Source: Pelomyxa schiedti
Lineage: Eukaryota; Protista; Evosea
NCBI GenBank assembly: GCA_020536535.1
Contig: JAHLWZ010000418.1
Span: 1-36,781, forward strand
Reading direction: 5' to 3'
Length of the DNA: 36,781 nucleotides
The notes under the pieces are model-generated. The model was not told the DNA's origin. It worked only from the letters and a program-made list of their open reading frames with translations, and made no database searches. Made by a program: the position numbers and the translations under genes. Shown here piece by piece: positions 1 through 32,754 of this stretch; the first letter of the stretch is position 1, and every line of letters begins with the position of its first letter.

Positions 1-30
1 TGTTACACAAAACTTAATTTGATCTCTCAG

Positions 31-333
31 ACTGCACTTCACCATGCCTGCAGAGGTGGACATGTTCAAATTGTGGAACGACTTCTCTCATGTGTGAGGA
101 TTGACACCAACATCAAGGTTTATTTTCCCCCCTTACTGTTTGTGTCGTGGATGTGCCATGATTTACGTGGGTTGGGCACAGAACATGAAAAGAAAAACAG
201 CTCTTGAGTGCTGTCTAAATGATGAAGTGGGCGACTGTTTCAAGCTGCATATCCAGCAACAGCAATGCAGCCAGTCACCACTCCCAAATCAGCTCAACAG
301 CACTCACAACCACCCTCTGCTGAAAAAAGTTGA
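31..333 (+). pseudogene. 3' part of a truncated ankyrin-repeat gene, paralogue of the ankyrin-kinase copies A/B/C; 5' part lies outside the window
   Basis: Exon TALHHACRGGHVQIVERLLSCVRIDTNIK and next exon NMKRKTALECCLNDEV match copy A with the same intron positions. A frameshift near 229 restores RLFQAAYPAT...PKSAQQHSQPPSA, ending at TGA 331-333. No coiled-coil or kinase exons follow. Confidence 0.65.
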
Positions 334-646
334 TAGAGTAATCACTTCTAAAATAAGGACACAACAAACACGAAAACGCGCACCATAGATCAAGATAAAT
401 GCATTCTCAATAGCACACTAAAAAACACACACATAGAACAAACAAACCACCTACTGCGCATAGAACCGTCGACGTACTTTTCCAACTGTGTCCCAACTTG
501 TTCTTCCCATCATTTCATCAAACACCGCTTTCTCCTAACTCGTCAACGCCAAAGAAAAAGAAAAAAAACCGCGCCACCAAAGCAAAGAGGCGGGCTACCA
601 AACAAAAACAGAGGTCTCTCGTTTGTGTGTTTGCACTAAACACAAA

Positions 647-3600
647 ATGTCCGGGTTCTTCAAGAGGATGAGCGGGATGCTGAGCGGGTGGGCGACGGCG
701 TGCGAGACCGGCCAGCTCGACCGCGTCGACCAGTTCCTGTCCTCCACCTCCAACGTCCCCACGGCCGCCGAGGTCTCCCGCGGGCTCGTCTCGGCCTGCC
801 GCTGGGGCCACGTCTCCCTGGTCCTGCGCCTCCTCCAGCTCCCCGTCGAGCCCCCCTCCCCGAGCTACAAGGGCCCCCTGCGCCCCTCTGTCGTGGACCC
901 GATCCCCTGCGAGGGCGGCAGCGCGGCGGCCGCGAGCGGCGCCGGCGGGGGCGGCCCCCAGCCCCCGGGGGTGGTCACCGAGACCGCCGTGGGGGTCGCC
1001 TGCCAGGGGGGCCACACCGACGTCGTGAGGCTGCTGATGAGGGAGCCCGGCGCCGACTCGGCCGCCGGCACCCTGCTTATGTTCGCGTGCCAAGGGGGGC
1101 ACTCTGACATCGTGGACATGCTGCTGGAGAAGCCGCTGAGCTCGGTCACTCCGGAGGAGATTGGGCGGAGCTTCGTGGCTGCCTGCAAGGCGGGGTTCTA
1201 TGGGATCGCGGCGGCGCTGATTGCGCTGAACCCTCCGCACATGAGGCCGAACTTGGCGTTTGCTGCTGGGACCGGGGAGACTCCGCTGTGCGCTGCTTGC
1301 GGCGCCGGCGTGCTGGAAGTTGTCAATTTGCTGCTGGAAACGATGGGGAGCAGCACGGTTTACGCCAAGGAGATATGTGAGAGATTCGTTGTTGCTTGCA
1401 AGGGAGGGCACATTGACGTCGTCAATAAGTTCTTGAGCCTGCCGCGGCCAATGAGACCTTCGCTGAACCACATTTCGAAGCTGGAACGGACCGCTCTGAG
1501 TGCTGCTTGTGAAGCCGGGCACCAGAACATTGTGGAATTGCTTCTCAGGGAAGAGCAAGATGTCAACCTTGGAAACGCTCTGTGGCATGCCTCGAAGAAC
1601 AATCGCCTCGAGATAGTCGAAAGATTGCTGAGGCATCCCAACATCGCCGTGAACAAAATGTTTGACAACAAAACGCCGCTCGTTGTTGCGATCCTTGACA
1701 ATCAGACTGACAAAGATTTCCTTGTTGCCCGGTTCTTATTTCCCGTTCCGCATTGATCCCACCACGTTGCCAAGAGAGTGTTCTGAGCAAACTTGGTGGA
1801 TATCCGAAATTATGTGAGCTCTATCAGCTCGGTATGTTTGTCATGGATTCTGTTCCGAACTTATTTCACATTCAGCCACAAGTATCGAGCTTGCGAAATT
1901 ACTGTTGGATCGTCAACATCCAAAAGGTGAGAGAGCTCATTTGCGTTTCTTTTTTTTTTTTTGATAACAACAACTCCTCAGGCATACAACTGCCGGCAGT
2001 GAATAATCCAGGAAAAGCCAGTGACCCAGACGAAAACCAGGAAATGCACGCCGCTCATAAGAGTTGCATCTCCAATACTTTAAAAAAATACCACTCATTT
2101 CTGTTCCAGGGATTGCGGAATTGGAAACACAAATTAAAACCATTCAGGAAGAAAGGCTGGCCGATTTGGAGGAAAGAGAACTGAACCAACAGACATTTTA
2201 TGAAATCCAAAACTGTGTGCATATGTCTATCACCCACCCCGTGTCAAATTCCTAACCATATATATATATATATATATATATTTCACTAAGATACGGACCA
2301 TGTTTTGATGCATGTGGAAGGAGGATCGTGGTGCAACCTTCTCCCTGAATTTCCCCCTGAAGGCAACTGCAAGAAGGGTCAAATCAGCATTTCGTTTGAA
2401 GAGTACTCACCCTTTGTTGAAACCGTGTGCTGTTCTTGTCCTCTTGACATGGTATTCTGTTTTTTGAGCCTTGTTTCCCTTCTCTGTGTTTATTTCATCC
2501 TGCAAAAAAAAAGGTTGCCAAAATCATCATCGCAAGAAAGTTTGGCGTTGAACCCAAGGAACAAATAGTTTCCACTGTTGGATCAGACAACTCGTCAGAG
2601 GAACAGCTGACAAACACATCCAGAACGTTGACAGACCTTCGAAAAAGCGACACTGCGGAAGATAGAGTTGTGCAAATCAAAGTCCGGATCGCATCGGCAA
2701 TGACCATCCAAGACGAGGACCTGAAGGCTGTGTCTTCACTTGGAACAGGGTCTTATGGAAAAGTTTCCAAATGCCTCCACACCAAAACAAACAGACTCGT
2801 GGCTGTGAAGTCTCTTCATGATCTCATCAGGTCTGAGTTCAACAACAACCGATTTCAACAGGAAGCTACGGTATTTCTCCCTCCCTGTGACTGAAGGACT
2901 CACGAGTTCTTTTCAAAGATTTCGTCAAGACTGAGGCACCCGAATATCGTGAGCTGCCTCGGAACATGCGTGAACAGTACCGGTGGACTTCAGATCGTCT
3001 CTGAACTCATGGAAATGAGCCTCAGGCAGCTCCTTGCTCGAGTTCGTTCCCCCTTTTTTTTTTTACTTTACTCATGTCAGTGGAACAGAAAAGTTTGAGC
3101 TTTCAAGAAATAATTGCACTCTCGTTGGGGATTGCCAGAGGAATGTCCGCACTTCACAAGTTTTGACGCCTTTCCTTTTTTTTTAATCGAGCTTAATTCG
3201 AATTCAACTCTGATGCTGTGTTCAGGAGGACTGTTATGCACAGGGACCTGAGCAGCAACAATGTTCTGTTGGATTCTCGTGGGACTCCTAAAATCACCGA
3301 CTTCGGTTTTGTAAATTTCTTTTGTACTTCAAGGAATCTCTAACAAGTACCGCAGGCGTGGCCCATGTGCTCAGAACCACTTTTGTTTCCACTTTGACCA
3401 ATGGAGCCGGGACTCCTCCTTATGTGGCACCTCAGATGTACACTCACCACTACGGAATCCAAGGTATTCCATTCTCCATTTTTCCGGTTGCCTTTTATAT
3501 CGCCTCATTTCACGCAACAGGAGATATGTGGGAGTTTGCCGTTTTATTGGGTGAGATGCTGAAAGGAACCGTACCAGACTCCCGACTCCCAAAGGTCTTG

Positions 3601-4086
3601 AGCCAAATCTCAGAGTTTATGAGAATCCAGAGGGCGTCACTCTCTCCCCTCGACGTTGCCGGTTGGTTGATTTCCTTGCCCATAATCCCGCCGCACACTT
3701 AAAACACGCACAGAAGTGAACCGGCTATGCAGCGACCCTGAGGTCGGTGAAATGGCAATTGCAGAGTGCCTCGGCCGGCGCAATACAATCCTCGAGGCTC
3801 TGCGTTGTGAGCCAAAGTTCAACAACATCCCCCTGACTTGCGTACGAATTTTCGCACTCGTTATCGAGTCATGCCTCTCGATTCTAGGTTTTTTTTTGAT
3901 TCCCCCATTCCTCAATTCAACTTACCGCATGCACAACACTCACAAAAACCAAACTCAGAGAACAACCGGCCGCCGTTCTCGGCGATTGAAAAGCAGCTGA
4001 TGACGTGCGCGCAACTGGCATTTTGCCCCTCGGCTGACGACGATAACGTGGACGCGTGTGTCAAACGGTGCCTCGCTGATTTGTAG
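647..4086 (+). CDS. Multi-exon ankyrin-repeat / coiled-coil / ubiquitin-like / TKL-type protein kinase (gene 1)
   Basis: First exon 647-~1730 has many ACxGGHxDIVxxLL ankyrin repeats. Kinase motifs span short GT-AG introns: GTGSYGKV, VAVK, HPNIV, HRDLSSNN, DFG, GTPPYVAPQ, GDMWEF, RPPF. Stop at 4084-4086. Confidence 0.9.
2258..2281. repeat. (TA)n microsatellite in an intron
   Basis: Direct reading of the atatat run. Confidence 0.9.
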
Positions 4087-4216
4087 GCACTCGTTTTGGG
4101 TGACCTTTAGAACGAAGAAGCATTCCTTTTACAGTTTTATTTTTATTGCGTGATTCGTCTTTAGACGGGGGTTCTATTGATCATCAATATCGGGGCAGCA
4201 TCACTGGTGTCTGGGC

Positions 4217-7200
4217 ATGTTCACCACTACGTTGCACAACAACCAGTCACGAGTTGGGCCCCACGAGTGGTTCACCGCCGCGATTAGAGGAAACACTAAC
4301 TCACTGTGGGAGCTGCTGGCCGGCGACCCCCGCCTACTCAACTCTGTCAACGACCTACAACAACAAGTGGTGTGTAAACATTGTTTTTTTTTTTTTTTCC
4401 TTTTTTCTTTTTCTCACACCATCATCATTCAATACTACAATATACACAATAATTCAGACAGCGTTGCATGCAGCCACGTGGGGAGGGAGTCCAAAGTGCG
4501 TTGAGATCCTGCTGTCAATGAATATTAATGTCAGTTCCCAGGTTTGTTTGTGGATATGACCACTTATTTTGATACTCACAAACTTGTACCATCTCACTTC
4601 ACAGATTGTGTGTGACATACCTTTACATTCCCTTTTCTCTAAAATCACAAATTCTCCCCCCACCCTACACGGCCCTAGGGTGAGCCTGTATGTACCGCCT
4701 TATTCCCCAAACTCCTCTGACTTGCTCCAATTTCGCTCCTTGCCTCGTTTAGAATGTGTGCAAATGCCCCCACCAAACCTTTTGGTTTATCAATCACCAA
4801 TTATTATTATCATTCATCAATTTCTCTCACTTGCTTCAACTTTACTCCTTTCCTCACTCTGTGTTTAGGATGTGAGTAACTGCCACCCGTTTCATTGATT
4901 TCTCTGACTAACTTCCATTTCCTGCGTTGCTGCATGCTTAGTATGTGCGTAACCTGCCCCAACTCTTTTTTATTGCGTTATTAATCGATTTCTCTGTCTT
5001 GCTTCAATTTCCTGCCTTGCTTCACTATGTCCGTTTAGTATGTGTGTAACCCCTTGTTCATCATCTTTTCTGACTTGCTTTGATTCCAACTCCTTGCTTT
5101 GCTCTGTGATAAATTCAGGGAGTATGTAACAACTCCCCCAACCCTTTTGATAGAATTATACATCAATATCTCTGACTTGCTTCCATTTGCATGTTTAGTA
5201 TGTATGTGACCCCAACAACCCTTTTGTTGCATGACTCTTCGTTTCTTACTTGCCTCAATTTCACTCCTTGCCTGGCTCTGTGAAAAACTCAGGGAGTGTG
5301 TACCCTTTTTTATTATTCATCAATTTCTCTGACTTGCCTCGATTTCCTCCCTTGCTTCACTCTGCTACATGTAGTTTGTGTGTATCTGCCCCCCTCAACC
5401 CTTTTTTTTATTGCATTATTCATCAATTTCTCGGACTTGCTTCAATTTTCACTCTTGCTTTGCTCTTTGTGATAAATTCAGGGAGTGTGTTACCTTTTTT
5501 GTGTTATTCATCAATTTATCTGACTTCCTTCAATTTCACTCCTTGCTCTGTCTGGCGTGTTTAGATTGTGTGTAACTGCCCTCAACAACCCTTTTTTTTT
5601 CGCGTTATTTATCATCCGTTTCTCTGACTTTCTTCAATTTTCACCCCTTGCCTCACTGTGTAACATTTAGCAAGTGTGTAGCTTCTGCCCTCCTTTTTTT
5701 TATTGCATAATACATCAATTTGTTGCGTTGTTCATCAATTTATCTGACTTGCTTCACCATACTTTGCTCTGTCTGGTGTTTTAGCATGTGTGTATCCCTT
5801 ACCTCAGGTCTTTTATTAATATTATTCCCTAACTTCTCTGATTTGCTTCAATTTCACTCCTTGCCTCACTCTCTCTGTTCAGCGGGTGTGTAACTACCCC
5901 CACCCCACCCTGTTTTTCATGAATTATTCATCAACTTATCTGACTTGCATAAATTTCACTCCTTGCTTCACATCTGGCGTTTTTAGCTTGTGTGTAACTT
6001 TTTATTATTCATCAACTTCTCTGACTTGCTTCAACTTTCACTCCTTGCTTCACTCTGTCTGCGGCATGTGTTTAGTATGTGTGTAACTCATTCCACCCTT
6101 TTTTGTTGCATGATTCGTCTGTTTCTTACTTTCTTCAATTTCACTCCTTGCTTGGCTCATGAAAAACTCAGGGAGTGTGTACCTTTTTTGTTATTCAATT
6201 TCTCTGACTTGGTTTTTTCACATTTGTGGATTGTTGTATTGCCATCAGGGAGTAAGTAAACACTCCATTGCAGCTTTTCATTCTAACTTTCTGGATTTAT
6301 GGTATTTTGCACTGCAGATTGTACGAACTCACATCTTGATTCTATCTCCCTTGTGCTTACCTTATTATTTTTAAGGAAGTACGAGCTTTTTTCTTTTGTT
6401 CTTGTTGTCTTCCTTATATCTTTTCTTGGGGTCTCTCTCTTTCAACTGAAAGGGTGATGTAAGCCCCCCACCTCCAATGTGCTTTGTTTTCTTTCCCTTT
6501 TTTGTTGCTTATTTTATTTCCATCTTTCTCTCCCTCTTTAGACCGCACTTCACCTTGCCTGCAGATTTGGACATGTTCAAATTGTGAAACAACTTCTATC
6601 TTGTGTGGATATAGGTACTCACCTCAAGGTTGTTTTCCCCCTGTTTGATTGACATGTAATCTTTCTGTTGGCACAGAACAAGGATGGGAAAACAGCCCTC
6701 GAGTGCTCTAAAAATGATGAAGTGCGGCAACTGTTCCAAACTGTGTGTCCAACCACCACAACATTGCAAACAACAACACCAGAGGTCACCAATCCCAAAA
6801 CAGCCCAACAACAACCACATCCACAAGCCCCCTCTGCTCCGGACAATACATCATCATATGCATTCACATCAACAACGCAGGCAGCCACCACTCCTAAAAC
6901 AGCCCAACAACAACAACCACGGCTACCCTCTGCTCCAAACATGACTTCACTGCCACCATCCACCCCACCACAACCACAACCCAAACCAACAACTGTGGTG
7001 GCAACCACAACCACAACTGTGAGGACCAGCAAGGTGCTCCCGAAAGATCTCGAAGAACGTGGTGACATCATCATCAACGTCAGGAAACAAGAAAGAGACT
7101 CTTGGGAAATTGGGGCAAAGCAGCTGAATAGTTGAGTGAAACTCCCTCCTCCAATCAAATGCACAAACATTGGTGCCCATCATCTCACTCACTTTGTGTT

Positions 7201-10200
7201 CAAAAGACGAGATCACAGAACTGAAGGCACGAATCACACATTTGGAGTATAAAAACACCAAGTACCTGAACCTTCTCCATGAAGAAAGAAGATGCAGAGA
7301 GGCTGACCAACAACGAATCACACAATTGGAGGAAGAAAACGCAAAGAACCTGAATCTTCTCCATGAAGAAAGAAAACGCCATGAAACTGATCAACAAAGA
7401 ATTAAAGAAATGAAGCAACTCTATGAAAAGAGAGTAACTAACCAGCAAAGATTTCGTGAGCTGCAACAACAATGTTTGTGCTCCTCCCTCACCCTTTCCT
7501 TCCTTCTCCTCATTTCAGAGCTTCTTTTTTGTTTTTCTCATCTCATTTTCACATGAAGGGAAAAAGAATGCAGAAGTGTGTTTTGAACTTGTTTGCCTTG
7601 ATGATAATAAGTTTTCTTAACAACACACATCCACACAGATGGAGATCCAAAGGTTGCAAGAAAAAAGCACGTTGGATATGATGGCAAAGAACAAGGGTTT
7701 GAACACCTCCTCTTCCAGCAATTGAACTCATTAGCTCCCCTGCACTTTTTTTTTTTCCTTTTTCCAAACAGAGATTATGGAACTGGAGGCGCACATAACA
7801 ACACTGGAGGAAGAAGGTGCAAAGAACTTGAAGATGTTTTGTGACGAGAGAGCATCCTACCAACAAAGATTTCGTGATCTCCAACACTGTTTGTACTGTC
7901 CACCCAACACACTCCCTCACTTTTCTGACCACACACATGCAAAACCCAGTGCCCACTATTCTAACTGTAAATTCAGACACGAAACACGTGATGTCACATG
8001 TTGAACAAAGAGAAGGCACATGGTGCAACATTCTCCCTGAAAACAACAACAATGACTGCAAGCGATCACAAATCAGGATTACGTTTGAGGACCTTCCCTC
8101 TTTTGATGAAATTGTTTGTGCCTTCTGTCCCCTTCAAATGGTACCTCTCTTGAAACTCCCCCCTTTTCTTTTTTAAGCTTCCCTGCACTCCCTTTCTTGT
8201 GTTGTTGCTAACTGGTTGCTGTGTCAAAAAGATTGTGAAGCTTATCATTTCAAGGAAGTTTGGAGTTGAACCAACACAACAAGTAATTTTCACTGTTGGT
8301 TCAGAAAACAACTCTGAGGAGCTGTTGACCGATTCATCCAGAACCTTGGATGACATTCAACGACAACAAGAACAACAAGTCAGCCACAGCAGAAACGGAG
8401 CTGTTCAAATCAAGGTTCGAATCAAATCAACCATGTCAATACAAGAGAAAGACCTGAAAGTCATTTCAACACTTGGATCTGGATCGTACGGAACTGTTTT
8501 CAAGTGCACCTTCCTTCACAACACCACAACCACCCCTTCAGAAACAACAACAACGTTTGTGGCAGTGAAATCACTTCACGAAGCCATCAAGTCTGAGTTC
8601 AACATCACCAGGTTTCAGCAGGAAGCTCTGGTGCGTGAGACTTTGTCTCTGATATTGTGTTTGAAATTACTTCGTCAACTCACCATCATCACCACACACA
8701 GATTTCGTCAAGGTTGAGGCACCCAAACATTGTGAGATGCCTTGGAACGTGCATCACGAGCACAGGGTCACTCTGGATCGTGTCTGAGCTCATGGAATTG
8801 AGCCTCAGGCAGCTCCTTCATCATGTTTGTTTTGTTGCTCTCACCTCTTCTTTCTCCCACTTTACTTATTGGACTCACACAAATTGTAAATATGAAACTA
8901 CCAATCACAAAATTATTAGAAAGATTTGACATTCATGGAAGTTGTAGCAGTTTCCTCAGGAATTGCCAAAGGGATGACTGCACTTCACAGGTTTCATTCA
9001 ATTTAAGTTCTTCTTGCGCACTCTTTTAAAATAACCTTTATGTTGACCAGCTGCCATCTAATTCGCTTTCCCCAAAAAAAATCCAATTAAAAAAAACNNN
9101 NNNNNNNNNNNNNNNNNNNNNNNNNNNNNNNNNNNNNNNNNNNNNNNNNNNNNNNNNNNNNNNNNNNNNNNNNNNNNNNNNNNNNNNNNNNNNNNNNACA
9201 GGAGGAATATAATGCACCGGGACTTGAGCAGCAACAATGTTCTCCTTGATTCTTGTGGAACTCCAAAAATAACTGACTTTGGTACAATTGGCACACATAC
9301 ATACATCTCAACTCAATCCCAAAAACTGAAAAATGAAGGAGTGTCAAGAGCCCTCCAGCAGCACCAAACCAGCCGTGGTAGCAGATCAGCTCTGATTGGG
9401 AGTTTTACAAATGGAGCCGGAACACCGATTTACTTGCCACCACAGATGCACACTGGGCACTATGGGATTCAAGGTATGGATGGTGATAGTTCACACATAC
9501 ACACCAATATATTTCAAAAAGGAGACATGTGGGGGTTTGCAGTTTTGTTGAGTGAACTTCTTCAAGGCACCGTCCCGGAGGTCATACTCCCCAAGGCCAT
9601 TGCCAAAATCAGTGAGCTTATGAGGGTCCAGCGAGCATCACTCTCACCTCCAGAAATTGCCGGTTTGTTGTTGACAACAACACAAATTTTACTCGTCATC
9701 TGACTCACACACACACAGAAGTGGACCGGCTTTGCGACGACATTGGGGACATTCCCGTTGCGGAGTGCCTCGGCCGGAAGATTGCAATCATTTCCGCGTT
9801 GCGTTCCGCGCCCAAGATGAACGACGTGCACCGCGCGTGCGTTGGTCTGTTCTCTGTCCTTGTAGAGTCCTGCCTCTCGGTCCTCGNNNNNNNNNNNNNN
9901 NNNNNNNNNNNNNNNNNNNNNNNNNNNNNNNNNNNNNNNNNNNNNNNNNNNNNNNNNNNNNNNNNNNNNNNNNNNNNNNNNNNNNNCCCCCCCCCCCCCC
10001 CCCCCCCCAGTCTCTCCTGACTCCACAAAAACACGCAGAAACCGACCGGCCGTCGTTCCCGGTGATTGACAAAGTGTTGATGACGTGTGCCGAGATCGTG
10101 TTCACCAATAATTCCAGACCCAACCCGCCCACAAATACAAACAACACAGCCACAACGAGTGACAACCAGGACGTGGCGGGGCACATCACCAGGTGCCTCG

Positions 10201-14900: not shown

Positions 14901-16077
14901 GCACATTGGGAGTGGGGAGTCAGTACATCGCCCTTTCGTTTCCAAGAGACCCCAAGAAAATATACATGAGGGAAGAAACAATACCAACAACAAGAAAAAA
15001 AGTTCATACTGCCTTGGAAAACAAGTAAAAAAGAGTCAAGGTGTGAGGGTTCATACAATCTACAATGCAAAATCGTAATAGACAAATCCAGCCAAGTTAG
15101 AACGAAAAGCAGCAAGGGAGTATTTTTACTTACTCCCTGGACAATAGGGAAGTGTAAAAATGAGATAATAAGTGTCACAGAGAAATTGAAACAAAGTCAG
15201 AGACTGCATAAATATGGTTGAGGTGGGGAGGGGTCAATTGCACACCCACTAACATGCCAGTAAAGTGTGTTTGCAAACAAGGGGTGAAATTGAAGCAAGT
15301 AAGAGACATTGTTGTCGTTAATTATTACCCAATATAAAAGTGGGTGGTTACACACAATCTAACCACAGACAGAGTGAAGCAAAATGGAAGCAAGTCAGAG
15401 AATTTGATGTATAATTATTACGCAATAAAAAGGGTTTGGGTGAGGGCCAGTGACACACCATCTAAGCATGCCCACAGAGTGACGTAAGGAGTGAAATTTA
15501 CCAACAACGAAAAAAAACAAATTTAGCTTACATACTAGACATGCTCATAGAGCGAATTCGGAGATAAGGTGATGAATAATGCAATAAAGAAAGGATTGAC
15601 AGTATACATACAGGCTTACCCTGGGATGGAAGATATACGTTTTTAGAGAAAAGGGAATGCAAACACAATCAGAGGAAGGAACGTATACACTACATACAAG
15701 CTAGGAAAGTGAGATGGAACAGTGATGCTGATAACCCAACAAACCTGGGAATTGACTTTGATATTTTGCTTTGACAGCAGGAACTCAACACACTGTGGCC
15801 TCCCTCCCCACGTTGCTGCATGCAACGCTGTCTGTGTGTGTTGTCAACGTGTGTGTGTGTGTGCGGGCAAAACAATTACAATCATCACGTGTGAGAAATA
15901 GAAAGAAAGCGGTTTTTGGTTCGCGAACATCTCACTCACACACACCATTCGTTCTCCTTCGTATTTCACGCAGTTTAGGAGGGCGGGGTGGTCGGCCAGC
16001 AGCCTCCGCAGTGTGTCAGGGTCTCCTTGATGCGCGGCTGCGAACCACTCGTCAATCGTCTCTAGTGATGCCGCCAT
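11925..16077 (-). CDS. Ankyrin (micro-exon loop) / coiled-coil / ubiquitin-like / kinase, copy B
   Basis: Start MAASLETIDEWFAAAHQGD. Same exon structure and motifs as copy A (TALHLAC, GVGSYG, HRDLSSNN, DFG, GTPIYLPPQ). Stop at 11925. Confidence 0.88.
14927..15700 (-). other. Array of 10 candidate micro-exons in copy B
   Basis: On the minus strand, each AG|exon|GT: CTT 15698-15700, GGTAAGCCT 15612-15620, TAT 15532-15534, ATG 15459-15461, ATT 15356-15358, TGG 15246-15248, GGA 15134-15136, ATT 15057-15059, GCA 15010-15012, GGCGAT 14927-14932. Translation L-GKP-Y-M-I-W-G-I-A-GD. Confidence 0.82.
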
Positions 16078-22473: not shown

Positions 22474-25400
22474 TTACCAGCAGAGCCCCAACCGGAGAGC
22501 TTGCAGTTGGCCAATGGCACGAGCATCACCCAGGTCAGCTGCCCGATGCCACAATCCAATTGCCTTGTCAATGTCTTTGCCAATACCATCGGAGCCTTTG
22601 AAGTAACGCCATGCAATGCTGTTCATTGCTGCAGGATAGCCAGCATCAGCAGCCCTCTGAATCAGTGTAACTGCCTTGCTGATGTCCTTCTCAACACCCT
22701 TGCCTTTGAAATAACAGCAACCAAGGCCAGTCATTGCCCTGGCATTACCCACATCAGCAGCCCTCTGGTACAGTGTGACTGCCTTGTGAATGTCCTTCTC
22801 GACGCCATTGCCTTTGTAAAAACACACACCAAGGTTGCACATTGCGGTGGCATTACCAGCATCAGCAGCCCTCAGGGACAGCGTCACTGCCTTGTGAACG
22901 TCCTTCTCAACACCATTGCCTTTGTAAAAACACACAGCATGGTTGCACATTGCCCTGGCATCACCAGCATCAGCAGCCCTCTGGTACAGTGGCACTGCCT
23001 TGTGAATGTCCTTGTCAACACCTCCAACACCAAACTCATGGCAGAGGCCCAGAGATGTGACAGAGGAGGAACCCCAGTCAATTGGACCAACAGAACAAGT
23101 GATCGCAATGGGTTTTCCACTGGGAACACTGCATGGCGACGCTGCTGCTTGTGCCATGATTTCGGCTAAAAGGTGGCCTGCTGATGAACCTTCTTGGTGG
23201 TTGTCTGTGGATGAAGAGTAGCAGAACATACTCCACACGGCAAGAAAGTACATGCAAGACAACGACTGTTCTGCTGAAGATGTTGTGGATGATGACTGTT
23301 GATGATGAATGTTGAATCTCAGTGATGCTGTTGACACAAGGTCAGCCCATTCAGAAACAATGTACTCTTCTTTGTTGTTTGTTTCATTCAACACATGCAT
23401 GCAATGCATTCTCATTTCCTCTGGTGAGAAGGAGAGAGCACGAGAGAAAGCCAGCCACAGGCACGTGGGAATGTGCTGATGAAGTGACACGTGGTCATTG
23501 ATGACATAACGTACGCAAACAAGGAACAACAGACCAGGGAGGTAATAATAGTCATGATCTGTGGTGGTATTTTATTAACATTTGTGTTTTGTTGGACAAA
23601 AACAAAAATGTAGGTAGGAACACACCCGAGGTATTGATGATCATCTCAGATTCAAACAGGGAGAATGCGTTGGCAACAAGAGCAAGGGCAGAGTCAATGT
23701 TTCCCACTTGCAACTCCAAAAGTGCTTCCATCATCATCTCGTTTCGTGTGTAAATCACATTCCTCATAAAAATGGAGGCTGGTGTAACTGGTTCTTGTTG
23801 TATTGCTGCAATTGTCGTTGGGCTCTTTTTCAAAAGCAACAAGGCAGTGTTGTGGAAACTTTCAGTATCACCTGAAATGTGCCTTGTCCAGAGTGCCGTC
23901 AAAACCAATTCCGGGAGTGTGTTTCTATGTTTCTTGTTGATGATGGCTCTTGTAAATTCCACGTCTGTGGCTGTGAAGGATGCGGTCTTGCCTCTCAGTG
24001 ATGCAACTTCAACTGCTTGTTGATGACGACTGTCTGTTGTATGCTGGTTGCAAAAAGAGAGATAATGCAAAAGCAACAAAGCAGGTGAAAACACGGGGTC
24101 AACATCAAGTGCTTGGTGGAGGGTGTCAACACTGTCTTCCGTGGAGGAACCACAAAGAATCTGACATGTTGCCTTGCTTGTCAATGTAACTGAAATTGGA
24201 GTGTAAGTGAAAGATACTCCACCCTTATTCTTACAACCTGCATCGTTTGTCAGAGGAATAACACAAGAGTAAAAAGAGAGGAGTTCAGAAGGGCTTGGTG
24301 ACTCAATGTTCAACAGAACCTCAAATGCATCAAGTAAGGGCATTCTCTTATCAGGGTCACATTGCAACAATGAGCGAACGAGGTCACAGAACTCCTTTGG
24401 GAACTGTGGTGGCTTCATGGGGAAAAGCTCCTCACTCTCAAATAAGAATGTGACCTTTCTGCTTGGGCCATAATCATCAGGGTATCCTGGAAGTGGGTGC
24501 TTTCCGCACATGGCAAGCTCAAACAGGATGCACCCAAGTTCAAATGATGGTTGCTGTGTTTTTGTTGTTTGTGAGAGATGGACGAAGTTTCACATGATTA
24601 AATCCAAAATACCTTGTCACAACACAATGTTGAAGAGTGATCAGGGTTCTGCCTGTATCCTGCAATTCCATTGATGACCTCCGGTGCTCTGTGACTTGTA
24701 TTTCCTCTCACCGAAATGAGAGACCTTGTTTCCATCTCAAATGGTCTTCTTGTATTGCTGGTTCTGAGAAACTTTGTTGCACGACCAAGGCCAATCAAAA
24801 TCACTTGTTCTTTGTTCTGTTGATTAAATTGCATTTGGATGAGTATTTTGAGTGAACAAAAGAGAGGGCTGGGTGGGAACAGCACACACAGAAGAAACAA
24901 CGATGTTGTCCAGTTTGATGTCAAAGTGAATGGTTTGATTCACGAAAAGATGAACAAGAGCAGCACAGATATCCCTTGAATACTTGTGAACAATGGGCCA
25001 CGGTGTGGTCGTTGCACGGGGAGGAGCAATGTTTTTCATGTGCTTCAGGAAGTGTTCCAATGTCTCAGAGTGATGCTCGAACACAACCCACACACACACA
25101 CGCATCCTCTTCTGAACTGGGTCAAAGGCCATGCCCTTGGCCGCTGGTGGGAGGTAGTCATAAAACTCTTCTGGGATGCGGTCTCTGAAGTGACAGAAGT
25201 ACCGGTTTACATTTGGATGTGGTTCCAACGTGGAGGACACAACGTATTCATTCTGTTACAGGAGGAGAAGACAACAACAAAAAAGTAATGTCAATTGAGT
25301 TACGTCTCAGGCAGGAAGGATGTGCACGTTACCTCAAAGGCATTCTTCACACTTGCTGTAATACCATAATTCAAAATAGCCTTGAGGACATACGACTGGT

Positions 25401-31000: not shown

Positions 31001-32754
31001 ATTTGATGGGGAAGGGGTTTTTCACTGCACTCTTCAGCTGCTTTGCCTCGATTTCCCAGCAGTCTCTCTCTTGTTTCCTGATGTTGTTGCTGGTTCCCAT
31101 TGTTGTTGTCGTTGGTCTTGCTGTTGCCCCCACAGTTGCAGTCGGTTGTGGTTGTGGTTTTGGTGGGGCGGATGAAGATCGTGATGGCCTGTTTGGAGCA
31201 GAGGGTGGTATCGGATATGGCTGTTGTTGTGGGGCTGTTTTGAGAGTGGCAACTGCCTGTGTTGTTGCTGATGTTGTGGCTGGACACACGGCTTGGAACG
31301 CTTGATGCACTTGATCATTTTTCGAGCACTCAAGTGCTGTTTTTCCCTCCTTGTTCTGTTCCGATAGGAAAATTACAACATATCAATCAAACAAAAGGGG
31401 GGGGGGACCTTGATGTGAGTGCCAGTACCCACACAAGACAGAAGTTGCTTCACAATTGCAACGTTTCCTTTTCTGCAAGCAAGATGAAGCGCGGTCTGAG
31501 AGGGAGAGAGGGAGACGAAAATTAAGTTTTGTGTCAAGCATCAAATAAAGGAAAGAAAACAAAGGACATTGGGAGGGGTGGGCGTACATCACCCTTTCAA
31601 TTTGAAAGAGAGACCCCCAAAAGATATATGAGTAACACAACAAGAACAAGAAAAAAATGTTGTACTTCCTGAAAAATAAGAAGGTAAGCACAGGAAATAT
31701 TCAAGGAGTGGATTTCATACAATCTGCAGCAGTGCAAAATATCATAAAAATCGCGGAAAGTTAGAATAAAAAAAAAGCCAGGGAGTACTTACTCCCTAAG
31801 GATCCAATTGTCCAACAATAGGTAGAAAAATGAGAGAAAGTGTTTCAGAGAAATTGAAGCAAGTCAGAAACTGATGAATAAACACAATAAAAAAGGGATG
31901 GGAGCAGTTACGCACATACTAAATATGCCACAGAGAGTGAAGCAAAGAGAGATAAATTGAAGCAAGTCATAAATTGATGATTAAACGCAATAAAAAAGTG
32001 TTGGGAGCAGTTACACAATACTAAATATGCCACAGAGAGTGAAAGTGAAGCAAAGAGAGAAATTGAAGCAAGTCATAAATTGATGAATACAATAAAAAGG
32101 GATGAGAGCAGTTACACACAGGCTAAACATGCCACAGAGAGTGAAGCAAGGAGGGAGAAATTGAAGCAAGTCAGAAATTGATGAATAAGTGCAATAANNN
32201 NNNNNNNNNNNNNNNNNNNNNNNNNNNNNNNNNNNNNNNNNNNNNNNNNNNNNNNNNNNNNNNNNNNNNNNNNNNNNNNNNNNNNNNNNNNNNNNNNGCA
32301 ATAAAAAAGGATTGAGAGTGGCAGTACGTACAAGATCCCCCTGGATTTACGTTGTTAGAGGAAAGGGAATGAAAACATAATCAAGATAGGTATTACATAC
32401 AATCTGTGAAGTGAGAGATACAAATTTGTGAGTGCCTACAAAATAAGGACCCTCAAACCTGAGAATTCACATGGATATTCATTGACAGCAGGAACTCGAC
32501 GCACTGTGGGTTCCCTCCCCACGTGGCTGCATGCAACGCTGTCTGTGTGTGGCGGCGAAAACGAATTATTATCGTGTGGAGAAAAAAAAAAAAAGAATTA
32601 CGCGCATTGCACTCACCACTCGTTCCCGTTCGTCGTTGACAGAGTTTAGTATGTAGCGGTCGCCGGCCAGATGGCGCCGCAGTGCGTCGGTGTCGCCATT
32701 TTTCGCGGCACGGAACCACTCCTCCGGTCCCACGCCTGTCCATAGTTCTATCAT
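28021..32754 (-). CDS. Ankyrin (micro-exon loop) / coiled-coil / ubiquitin-like / kinase, copy C
   Basis: Start MIELWTGVGPEEWFRAAKNGD. Same exon chain and kinase motifs as copies A and B. Stop at 28021. Confidence 0.88.
31588..32403 (-). other. Micro-exon array in copy C (at least 8 intact, one defective, partly hidden by an N gap)
   Basis: ATT 32401-32403, GGGGATCTT 32332-32340, [gap 32198-32297], CCT 32120-32122, defective TAT(T) 32017-32020, TAT 31916-31918, GGA 31793-31795, ATT 31721-31723, GAA 31666-31668, GGTGAT 31588-31593. Repeat period about 102 bp at 31850-32195. Confidence 0.8.

Follow-up and report, generated by a model that had tools for sequence, protein, structure and literature searches.

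An array of single-codon micro-exons that may encode a variable hairpin loop in ankyrin-kinase genes of Pelomyxa schiedti

Can a long row of single codons, each enclosed by its own pair of splice signals, be a coding sequence, and if so, what does it encode? This question is raised by a stretch of 36,781 nucleotides from the anaerobic amoeba Pelomyxa schiedti (contig JAHLWZ010000418.1, positions 1 to 36,781, called the window in the following), which contains three ankyrin-kinase genes that are paralogs of each other (A, B and C). In gene A, two ankyrin exons are separated by an array of nucleotide triplets with AG in front and GT behind, called copy A here, and genes B and C harbor the corresponding copies B and C. 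An earlier note on this DNA had proposed that the triplets encode a Tyr/Gly-rich loop that resembles the third complementarity-determining region of antibody heavy chains (CDR-H3). The answer reached here is that gene A probably encodes a cytosolic ankyrin-kinase with a recognition loop of 25 residues, which is contributed by 22 spliced-in micro-exons, and that the loops of the paralogs probably form a repertoire under diversifying selection. About 28 paralogs with such arrays were used for the analyses of the family (loci L001-L028 and the window), and codons were counted in 268 high-scoring units from these loci.

The 17 variable triplets of copy A were found exactly at the positions claimed before, i.e., 4753-6251, and their translation is NDYYGYGFGIQHRLYGG. 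Each of them has a preceding AG and a following GT, and the following motif is GT(R)NGT. As claimed, the 17 residues include 4 Tyr, 5 Gly, 1 Phe, 1 His and 1 Arg, and the residues Y, M, I and W of copy B (TAT, ATG, ATT and TGG, minus strand) as well as P and Y of copy C (CCT and TAT) were also recovered. The pattern YAGNNNGTRWGT has 26 matches in the window, 16 of which are in copy A, versus 1.99 expected matches (100 shuffles, maximum 5), showing that the AG-NNN-GT arrangement is not due to chance. A stricter 16-mer pattern had 127 matches genome-wide, compared to 2 matches of a reversed control.

At the DNA level, copy A comprises 22 micro-exons, i.e., 20 single-codon exons, one exon of 9 nt and one exon of 6 nt, all of which are flanked by AG and GT and are in phase 0 (Table 1). 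The introns of the array have lengths of 55-113 nt, and those between the 17 variable exons have lengths of 70-113 nt. The predicted loop thus has 25 residues, namely IGEP, the 17 variable residues, IE, and GD. Several parts of this framework are shared within the family. The upstream ankyrin exon has about 28 paralogous copies across the genome, and the downstream ankyrin exon could be aligned for 21 paralogs with a mean column identity of 83%. The Ile exon at 4605 has a conserved counterpart in first place among the micro-exons of most paralogs. The 9-nt exon was always in frame and free of stop codons in about 12 paralogs, and in copy C a GT donor is present only if it is read as a 9-nt exon.

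The position of the array within the ankyrin domain was derived from profile matches. The Pfam Ank profile (PF00023) has 33 positions and a gathering cut-off of 21.1 bits, which was exceeded by both flanking exons. The earlier note had placed the loop at an ankyrin beta-hairpin, and this was borne out, as both flanking exons start at profile position 4 (the T of TPLH). In the upstream exon, the match extends over the positions 4-29, and with two further residues the exon ends near position 31; in the downstream exon, the match extends over the positions 4-28. The positions that are left out between the two exons are 32, 33, 1, 2 and 3, i.e., the tip of the beta-hairpin. Because these are the only missing positions, the 25-residue loop of copy A stands in for a tip of five residues. 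In the two minimal paralogs, three single-codon exons and the Gly-Asp exon add up to exactly five residues (D, H, F, GD in L019; K, E, I, GD in L028), and the 28-residue exon together with these five residues forms a canonical repeat of 33 residues with the motif G-x-T-[AP]-L-H. Gene A contains about four repeat-like units, and the loop joins the second and the third, which are the only two that score as Pfam Ank. Ankyrin hairpins are known to belong to the binding interface (PMC4986451).

Next to their position, the units carry signatures of selection, which are seen at the level of the family. Every complete array (23 of 23) ends with the Gly-Asp exon, which lies 45-92 nt ahead of the next exon and the variants of which are synonymous only (GGT, GGC or GGA for Gly, GAT or GAC for Asp), indicating purifying selection on the protein. 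Across the variable units, AG and GT are invariant, and the highest variability was found in the columns of the codon positions 1 and 2, with pairwise mismatches of 0.70 and 0.69, respectively, versus at most 0.53 at any other position. For eight young arrays, unit trees were built from the introns, and changes were counted by parsimony. The codon positions 1 and 2 had undergone 7-20 times more steps per site than the intron columns and were the top-ranked of about 95 columns, and position 3 was intron-like. As there is hardly any variation at position 3, almost every one of these changes leads to a different amino acid. The third base is a T in 211 of the 268 units, and after a G at the second position it is an A (GGA, CGA, AGA). 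Codons of the type NGT were found 7 times versus 30 expected occurrences, and GTT was not found at all versus 12.9 expected occurrences. Both would create a competing GT donor (beside GTGTGT), and, thus, their depletion argues for selection on precise splicing of 3 nt. The number of variable units differs among the paralogs from 3 to about 27, always in a frame-neutral way. Taken together, these signatures make it unlikely that the arrays of this family are a satellite that is never spliced.

The composition of the units is also biased. The family-wide residues are Tyr (15%), Ile (12%), Leu (10%), Gly (10%), Asp (10%), Phe (10%) and His (7.5%), while there is no Val and no Lys, and Ala, Ser, Thr and Cys occur only rarely. 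Compared to the T-rich base composition of the introns, TAT is over-used 2.4-fold, GAT 4.8-fold and CAT 2.1-fold, whereas TTT reaches 0.7-fold and TCT 0.3-fold of the expected usage (naive chi-square 195, 15 degrees of freedom; its P value is inflated because the units are not independent). An A at position 2 exceeds the background in 17 of 21 arrays. No other codon is as common or as widely distributed as TAT (17 of 26 arrays), for which at least 12 independent gains were inferred. The earlier note had considered neutral drift from a TAT/GGA ancestor as another source of the composition; for the family as a whole this does not hold, as the codon usage is far off the neutral expectation. A simple descent of the Tyr/Gly richness from a Tyr-Gly dimer was likewise rejected for the family, based on the rates, the codon bias and the repeated gain of TAT. 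For copy A itself, the enrichment of Tyr and Gly is real (9 of 17 residues, 53%), and its Gly count stems partly from the duplication of a Tyr-Gly dimer unit, as indicated by a period of 191 detected with Tandem Repeats Finder (TRF) and by unit similarities. The GGA units of copy A stayed GGA, while related NNT units, the introns of which are about 82% identical, read TTT, ATT and TAT.

The proposed similarity to CDR-H3 could be upheld in part. Both are hypervariable loops of variable length that are enriched in Tyr, and copy A is also enriched in Gly and Asp. CDR-H3 loops are enriched in Tyr and disfavor hydrophobic residues including Leu and Val, germline selection for Tyr codons in DH segments has been described (PMC7550431), and Tyr is favored in binding sites, including those of synthetic binders (PMC5405424). 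The enrichment of Tyr in the Pelomyxa loops agrees with this, but not the overall composition: Ile, Leu and Phe together make up 32% of the family-wide residues, Ser, Thr and Ala are scarce, and many paralogs are not rich in Tyr and Gly. Their loops are instead rich in Pro/Phe/Leu, Pro/Phe/His, Tyr/His or Asp/Ile. In a poorly resolved tree based on the flanking exons, most, but not all, of the Tyr/Gly-rich arrays are grouped in one broad clade. In addition, the diversity of the Pelomyxa loops is, as far as shown, a diversity between paralogs and not between cells. The contigs of two DNA runs are colinear with the array of copy A and gave no sign of somatic rearrangement or hypermutation of the DNA, being near variant-free in the array, though contigs can hide rare variants; the sole variant was a single-base insertion at 5415 in one DNA contig. 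The analogy to CDR-H3 is, therefore, only partial.

Some DNA contigs (runs X3 and X4; 4716-6087) join the array backwards, e.g., from 6087 to 4716 with about 22 other letters in between. These joints are probably derived from paralogous arrays or from alternative arrangements of the units, and the number of units of copy A in the assembly may thus be inexact.

The central question is whether the codons are spliced in. The lengths of 250 array introns were determined to be 44-160 nt with a median of 95.5 nt, which overlaps with the lengths of the RNA-verified introns of the locus (45-95 nt). The motif CTRAC (within TCTCTGACTTGCTTC) occurs in 120 of these 250 introns versus about 33 in shuffles, at a median distance of 47 nt upstream of the acceptor; it is a candidate for an unusually distant branch site.

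Several points weigh against a recognition loop built from spliced-in codons. The RNA contigs of two single-cell RNA runs (X1 and X2) are confined to 3226-3310, 6891-7337 and 8233-8991 at this locus and cover none of 3397-6745, and hence none of the array; the case for coding therefore rests on the evolutionary signatures across the about 28 paralogs. A protein-database search with the open frame that holds the upstream ankyrin exon yielded no candidate of 83-264 amino acids. A protein search for which 21 downstream exons were combined into a profile gave no useful information, because giant multi-repeat ankyrin proteins dominated the results and a query of 30 residues was poorly chosen, and no relative was found when metagenome contigs were searched for related loci. 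In copy A, which is an old array with diverged introns, the excess of codon changes over intron changes is 2.6-fold only, and position 2 is unexceptional. The unit trees are noisy, as they are based on about 90 columns, and the high fraction of Ile, Leu and Phe, one third of the family composition, was not expected for a CDR-H3-like loop, nor were the many arrays without a Tyr/Gly bias. Lastly, the array of L001 contains an in-frame TGA unit with intact splice sites. This unit (G000:C219, minus strand, reverse-strand offset 1245) has the sole stop codon among the 268 units; either it is skipped, or this copy is a pseudogene, or the unit is an allele.

An RNA contig that joins 8991 to 3236 with nine letters in between was considered as a case of a 9-nt micro-exon, but was rejected, as it represents a contiguous exon of a paralog.

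Three other explanations of the array were weighed. The first is that the array generates diversity at the RNA level, with individual single-codon exons being left out at random or under regulation, so that each gene would produce many loop isoforms. Any subset of the exons would stay in frame, as every exon is in phase 0 and a multiple of three, and alternatively spliced codon-sized microexons have a precedent in Tuber, as far as described in PMC4986451 and PMC3689799. The splice-site scores differ between the units and range from 5 to 36, but they are strong and uniform in most units, and short introns favor intron definition and constitutive removal. The TGA unit of L001 would be tolerable for such a mechanism if it is skipped, but the RNA contigs of the two runs do not include any array transcript in which isoforms could be seen. 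Diversification by skipping is, thus, regarded as quite unlikely. A combination of both levels can also be envisaged, in which a germline repertoire of loops and stochastic skipping of codon exons together yield antibody-like cytosolic receptors wired to kinases, without any DNA rearrangement, in a protist packed with prokaryotic endosymbionts. This combined system is a rather doubtful proposal.

The second explanation accepts that the codons reach the mRNA, but regards the loop as a flexible spacer or a low-complexity 'sticker' of aromatic residues and Gly for self-association, with a composition that results mainly from splice-site constraints (NNT or NGA) and a T-rich mutation bias. The predominance of T at the third base indeed limits the alphabet to about 15 residues; Lys, Trp, Met, Gln and Glu can be reached only with a different third base. 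However, the usage within the NNT codons is far from the mutational expectation, with TTT and TCT being under-used and TAT, GAT and CAT being over-used. Alternating aromatic-Gly patterns are present in copy A, L003, L004 and L009, but the fast change and the paralog-specific loops fit better to diversifying selection, and the loop is situated on the ankyrin hairpin, a known contact surface. A spacer or sticker has a small chance of being the correct explanation.

The third explanation, i.e., that the array is an intronic minisatellite with AG-NNN-GT triplets that are duplicated pseudo-exons outside the mRNA and a direct junction of 4541 to 6542, is very unlikely, because, although copy A is outside all RNA contigs, AG and GT could persist by descent in tandem-duplicated units (TRF period 191), and no database protein with the upstream exon was found, such a junction would drop five hairpin residues and leave a repeat of 28 residues, the minimal arrays supply exactly five residues, the Gly-Asp exon is kept in all complete arrays with synonymous changes only, the rate of change in the codon columns is far above that in the introns although AG/GT and position 3 are kept, NGT and GTT are rarer than expected, and stop codons are nearly absent.

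The preferred reading, a recognition loop built from spliced-in codons, would imply the following mechanism. The protein of gene A, probably cytosolic, would consist of a small ankyrin domain, a linker, a coiled coil and a protein kinase. The module of the array is one intron plus one codon, and each short unit is self-contained. Similar introns could recombine unequally, and residues would be gained or lost with the frame kept, while the identity of a residue shifts via substitutions at the codon positions 1 and 2. A T at the third base (A after G) makes the donor site unambiguous and rules out most stop codons, and splicing would presumably proceed via intron definition. In this way, the about 28 paralogs would provide a germline repertoire of differing finger loops under diversifying selection, with copy A at its Tyr/Gly-rich end. 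The finger loops would most plausibly bind ligands and thereby couple recognition to kinase signaling. The recognition of microbes or endosymbionts by the loop, as suggested in the earlier note, is appealing in the case of endosymbionts, but pure speculation; Pelomyxa schiedti is described as a symbiont-rich amoeba in PMC10579272.

The coordinates of the three genes and of their arrays are summarized in Table 1. The cytosolic location of the gene A protein is assumed because no hydrophobic signal-like stretch was found in its translated, predicted N-terminus. The 50-residue N-terminal exon resembles an N-terminal ankyrin cap; it had no match in a Pfam scan and is outside the RNA contigs of the two runs. 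The exons at 6891..7337 encode the linker and a coiled-coil-like 84-nt repeat. This tandem repeat has about two copies (7229-7419, plus strand, TRF) within RNA-supported exons of gene A, and its product is Lys/Glu-rich, coiled-coil-like, and located between the ankyrin part and the kinase part. The pre-kinase segment in the exon 8154..8714 is conserved, and the kinase motifs HRD and DFG are visible in paralog B. Among those exons and open frames of A, B and C that were scanned, matches were restricted to Ank and protein kinase, and no NACHT domain was found.

Table 1. Coordinates of the ankyrin-kinase genes, their flanking exons and their micro-exons in the window
Feature	Position	Strand	Remarks
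Gene A	~4217 to beyond 9000	+	
Gene A, putative first coding exon	4217..4366	+	ATG start, 50 residues, GT donor at 4367; limits inferred
Upstream ankyrin exon	4458..4541	+	28 aa, TALH start, ...NVSSQ end, phase 0; Pfam Ank 23.1 bits
Framework single-codon exon ATT (Ile)	4605..4607	+	AG/GT flanks; B, C and further arrays read ATT or CTT
Framework 9-nt exon GGTGAGCCT (Gly-Glu-Pro)	4679..4687	+	Gly-x-x in paralogs, x-x variable
17 variable single-codon exons	starts 4753, 4869, 4942, 5039, 5119, 5199, 5293, 5375, 5482, 5565, 5671, 5785, 5883, 5987, 6076, 6172, 6249	+	codons in order AAT GAT TAT TAT GGA TAT GGA TTT GGA ATT CAA CAT CGG CTT TAT GGA GGA; residues in order N D Y Y G Y G F G I Q H R L Y G G
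Framework single-codon exon ATT (Ile)	6318..6320	+	conserved across A, B, C and further paralogs
Framework single-codon exon GAA (Glu)	6376..6378	+	GCA in B, GAA in C
Terminal 6-nt exon GGTGAT (Gly-Asp)	6453..6458	+	G-x of the ankyrin motif G-x-T-P-L-H
Downstream ankyrin exon	6542..6631	+	TALHLACR... start, phase 0; Pfam Ank 31.1 bits
Gene A, downstream exons	6891-7130 joined to 7207-7337	+	RNA contigs (run X1), 76-nt GT..AG intron
Gene A, pre-kinase and kinase start exon	8154..8714	+	Pfam PK_Tyr_Ser-Thr, E = 1.9e-4; partial RNA contig coverage
Gene B	15831 down to ~12741	-	
Copy B array	14927..15700	-	L, GKP, Y, M, I, W, G, I, A, GD; ten micro-exons; flanking ankyrin exons 15745-15831 and 14747-14836
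Gene C	32542 down to ~29133	-	
Copy C array	31588..32403	-	I, GDL, P, 100-N gap, decayed TAT unit, then Y, G, I, E, GD

The array of copy C is interrupted by a scaffold gap of 100 N (32198-32297). It also includes a decayed unit at 32015-32020 (minus strand), in which TGTGTAAC replaces GTGTGTAAC after TAT, so that the G of the donor is lost or shifted and a 6-nt exon would result. The decayed unit points to a birth-and-death process of array units.

Additional family members and one further kinase-like gene are located in the window. An intron-poor ankyrin-kinase paralog is present at 539-3700 (plus strand), the ankyrin region of which is one open frame of 405 amino acids without micro-exons (Pfam Ank_2, E = 9e-33). 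One of its inter-repeat hairpins has a Pro/Gly/Ala-rich insertion of about 45 residues (~850-985; GGC repeat at 914-955), i.e., a long loop that is placed as in gene A, yet is contiguously encoded. The tail of another family member with a downstream-type ankyrin exon (TALHHACRGGH...) is situated at 1-204 (plus strand), and its array would precede the start of the window. A distinct kinase-like gene, which encodes five Sel1 repeats (Pfam Sel1, E = 1e-47), was found at 22477-24589 (minus strand), where a 108-nt tandem repeat at 22640-23022 represents Sel1 units of 36 amino acids.

Three known systems can be compared with these arrays. The micro-exon genes (MEGs) of Schistosoma have exons of 6-36 nt, which encode most of small secreted proteins. 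Both systems have runs of symmetric, frame-preserving micro-exons that permit protein variation, whereas the exons in Pelomyxa mostly have 3 nt and belong to one loop of a folded intracellular domain. The closest example is the immune-like NACHT-ANK family of the truffle Tuber melanosporum, for which 'tens of codon-sized microexons' and alternative splicing were reported (Iotti 2012, as cited in PMC4986451 and PMC3689799). As far as it is described there, it shares with the Pelomyxa genes many consecutive 3-nt exons in ankyrin regions as well as expanded, fast-diversifying paralogs with a supposed role in recognition. In contrast, Tuber is an ascomycete and Pelomyxa an amoebozoan, and the effector in Pelomyxa is a protein kinase, with no NACHT domain in the scanned exons and frames. 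In addition, alternative splicing is documented for Tuber, whereas the Pelomyxa array is known from DNA, and the Pelomyxa array is confined to one hairpin within a small ankyrin domain. A full-text search of the literature revealed no such arrays for Pelomyxa or other protists, and Tuber was the sole precedent found. The third system is the LoopDARPins, which are engineered libraries (Schilling et al. 2014, as described in PMC5405424). According to this description they also have an ankyrin scaffold with an extended, diversified loop that projects from the edge of a beta-turn and enlarges the binding surface, features that would also apply to the predicted loop of Pelomyxa. In contrast to the LoopDARPins, the Pelomyxa loop is natural and germline-encoded, and its length and sequence vary among paralogs.

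With spliced-in codons, every loop residue would have an exon to itself, which would be an extreme case of splicing, with runs of at least 20 exons of 3 nt, for which exon definition would be impossible. Such an array would also be a device for evolvability, because the duplication of units would alter the length of the loop without a frameshift, and the identity of the residues would be free between conserved splice signals. Standard gene annotation will miss such loops entirely, and the rules of composition, i.e., T at the third base, NGA instead of NGT, no GTT, and a preference for Tyr, Asp, His and Ile, could aid in finding and annotating them. Spliced-in codons would make the Pelomyxa genes a natural counterpart of the engineered LoopDARPins and a second, independent invention of the NACHT-ANK design of truffles. 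This suggests that arrays of codon exons are a recurrent path to receptor diversity in eukaryotes without adaptive immunity.

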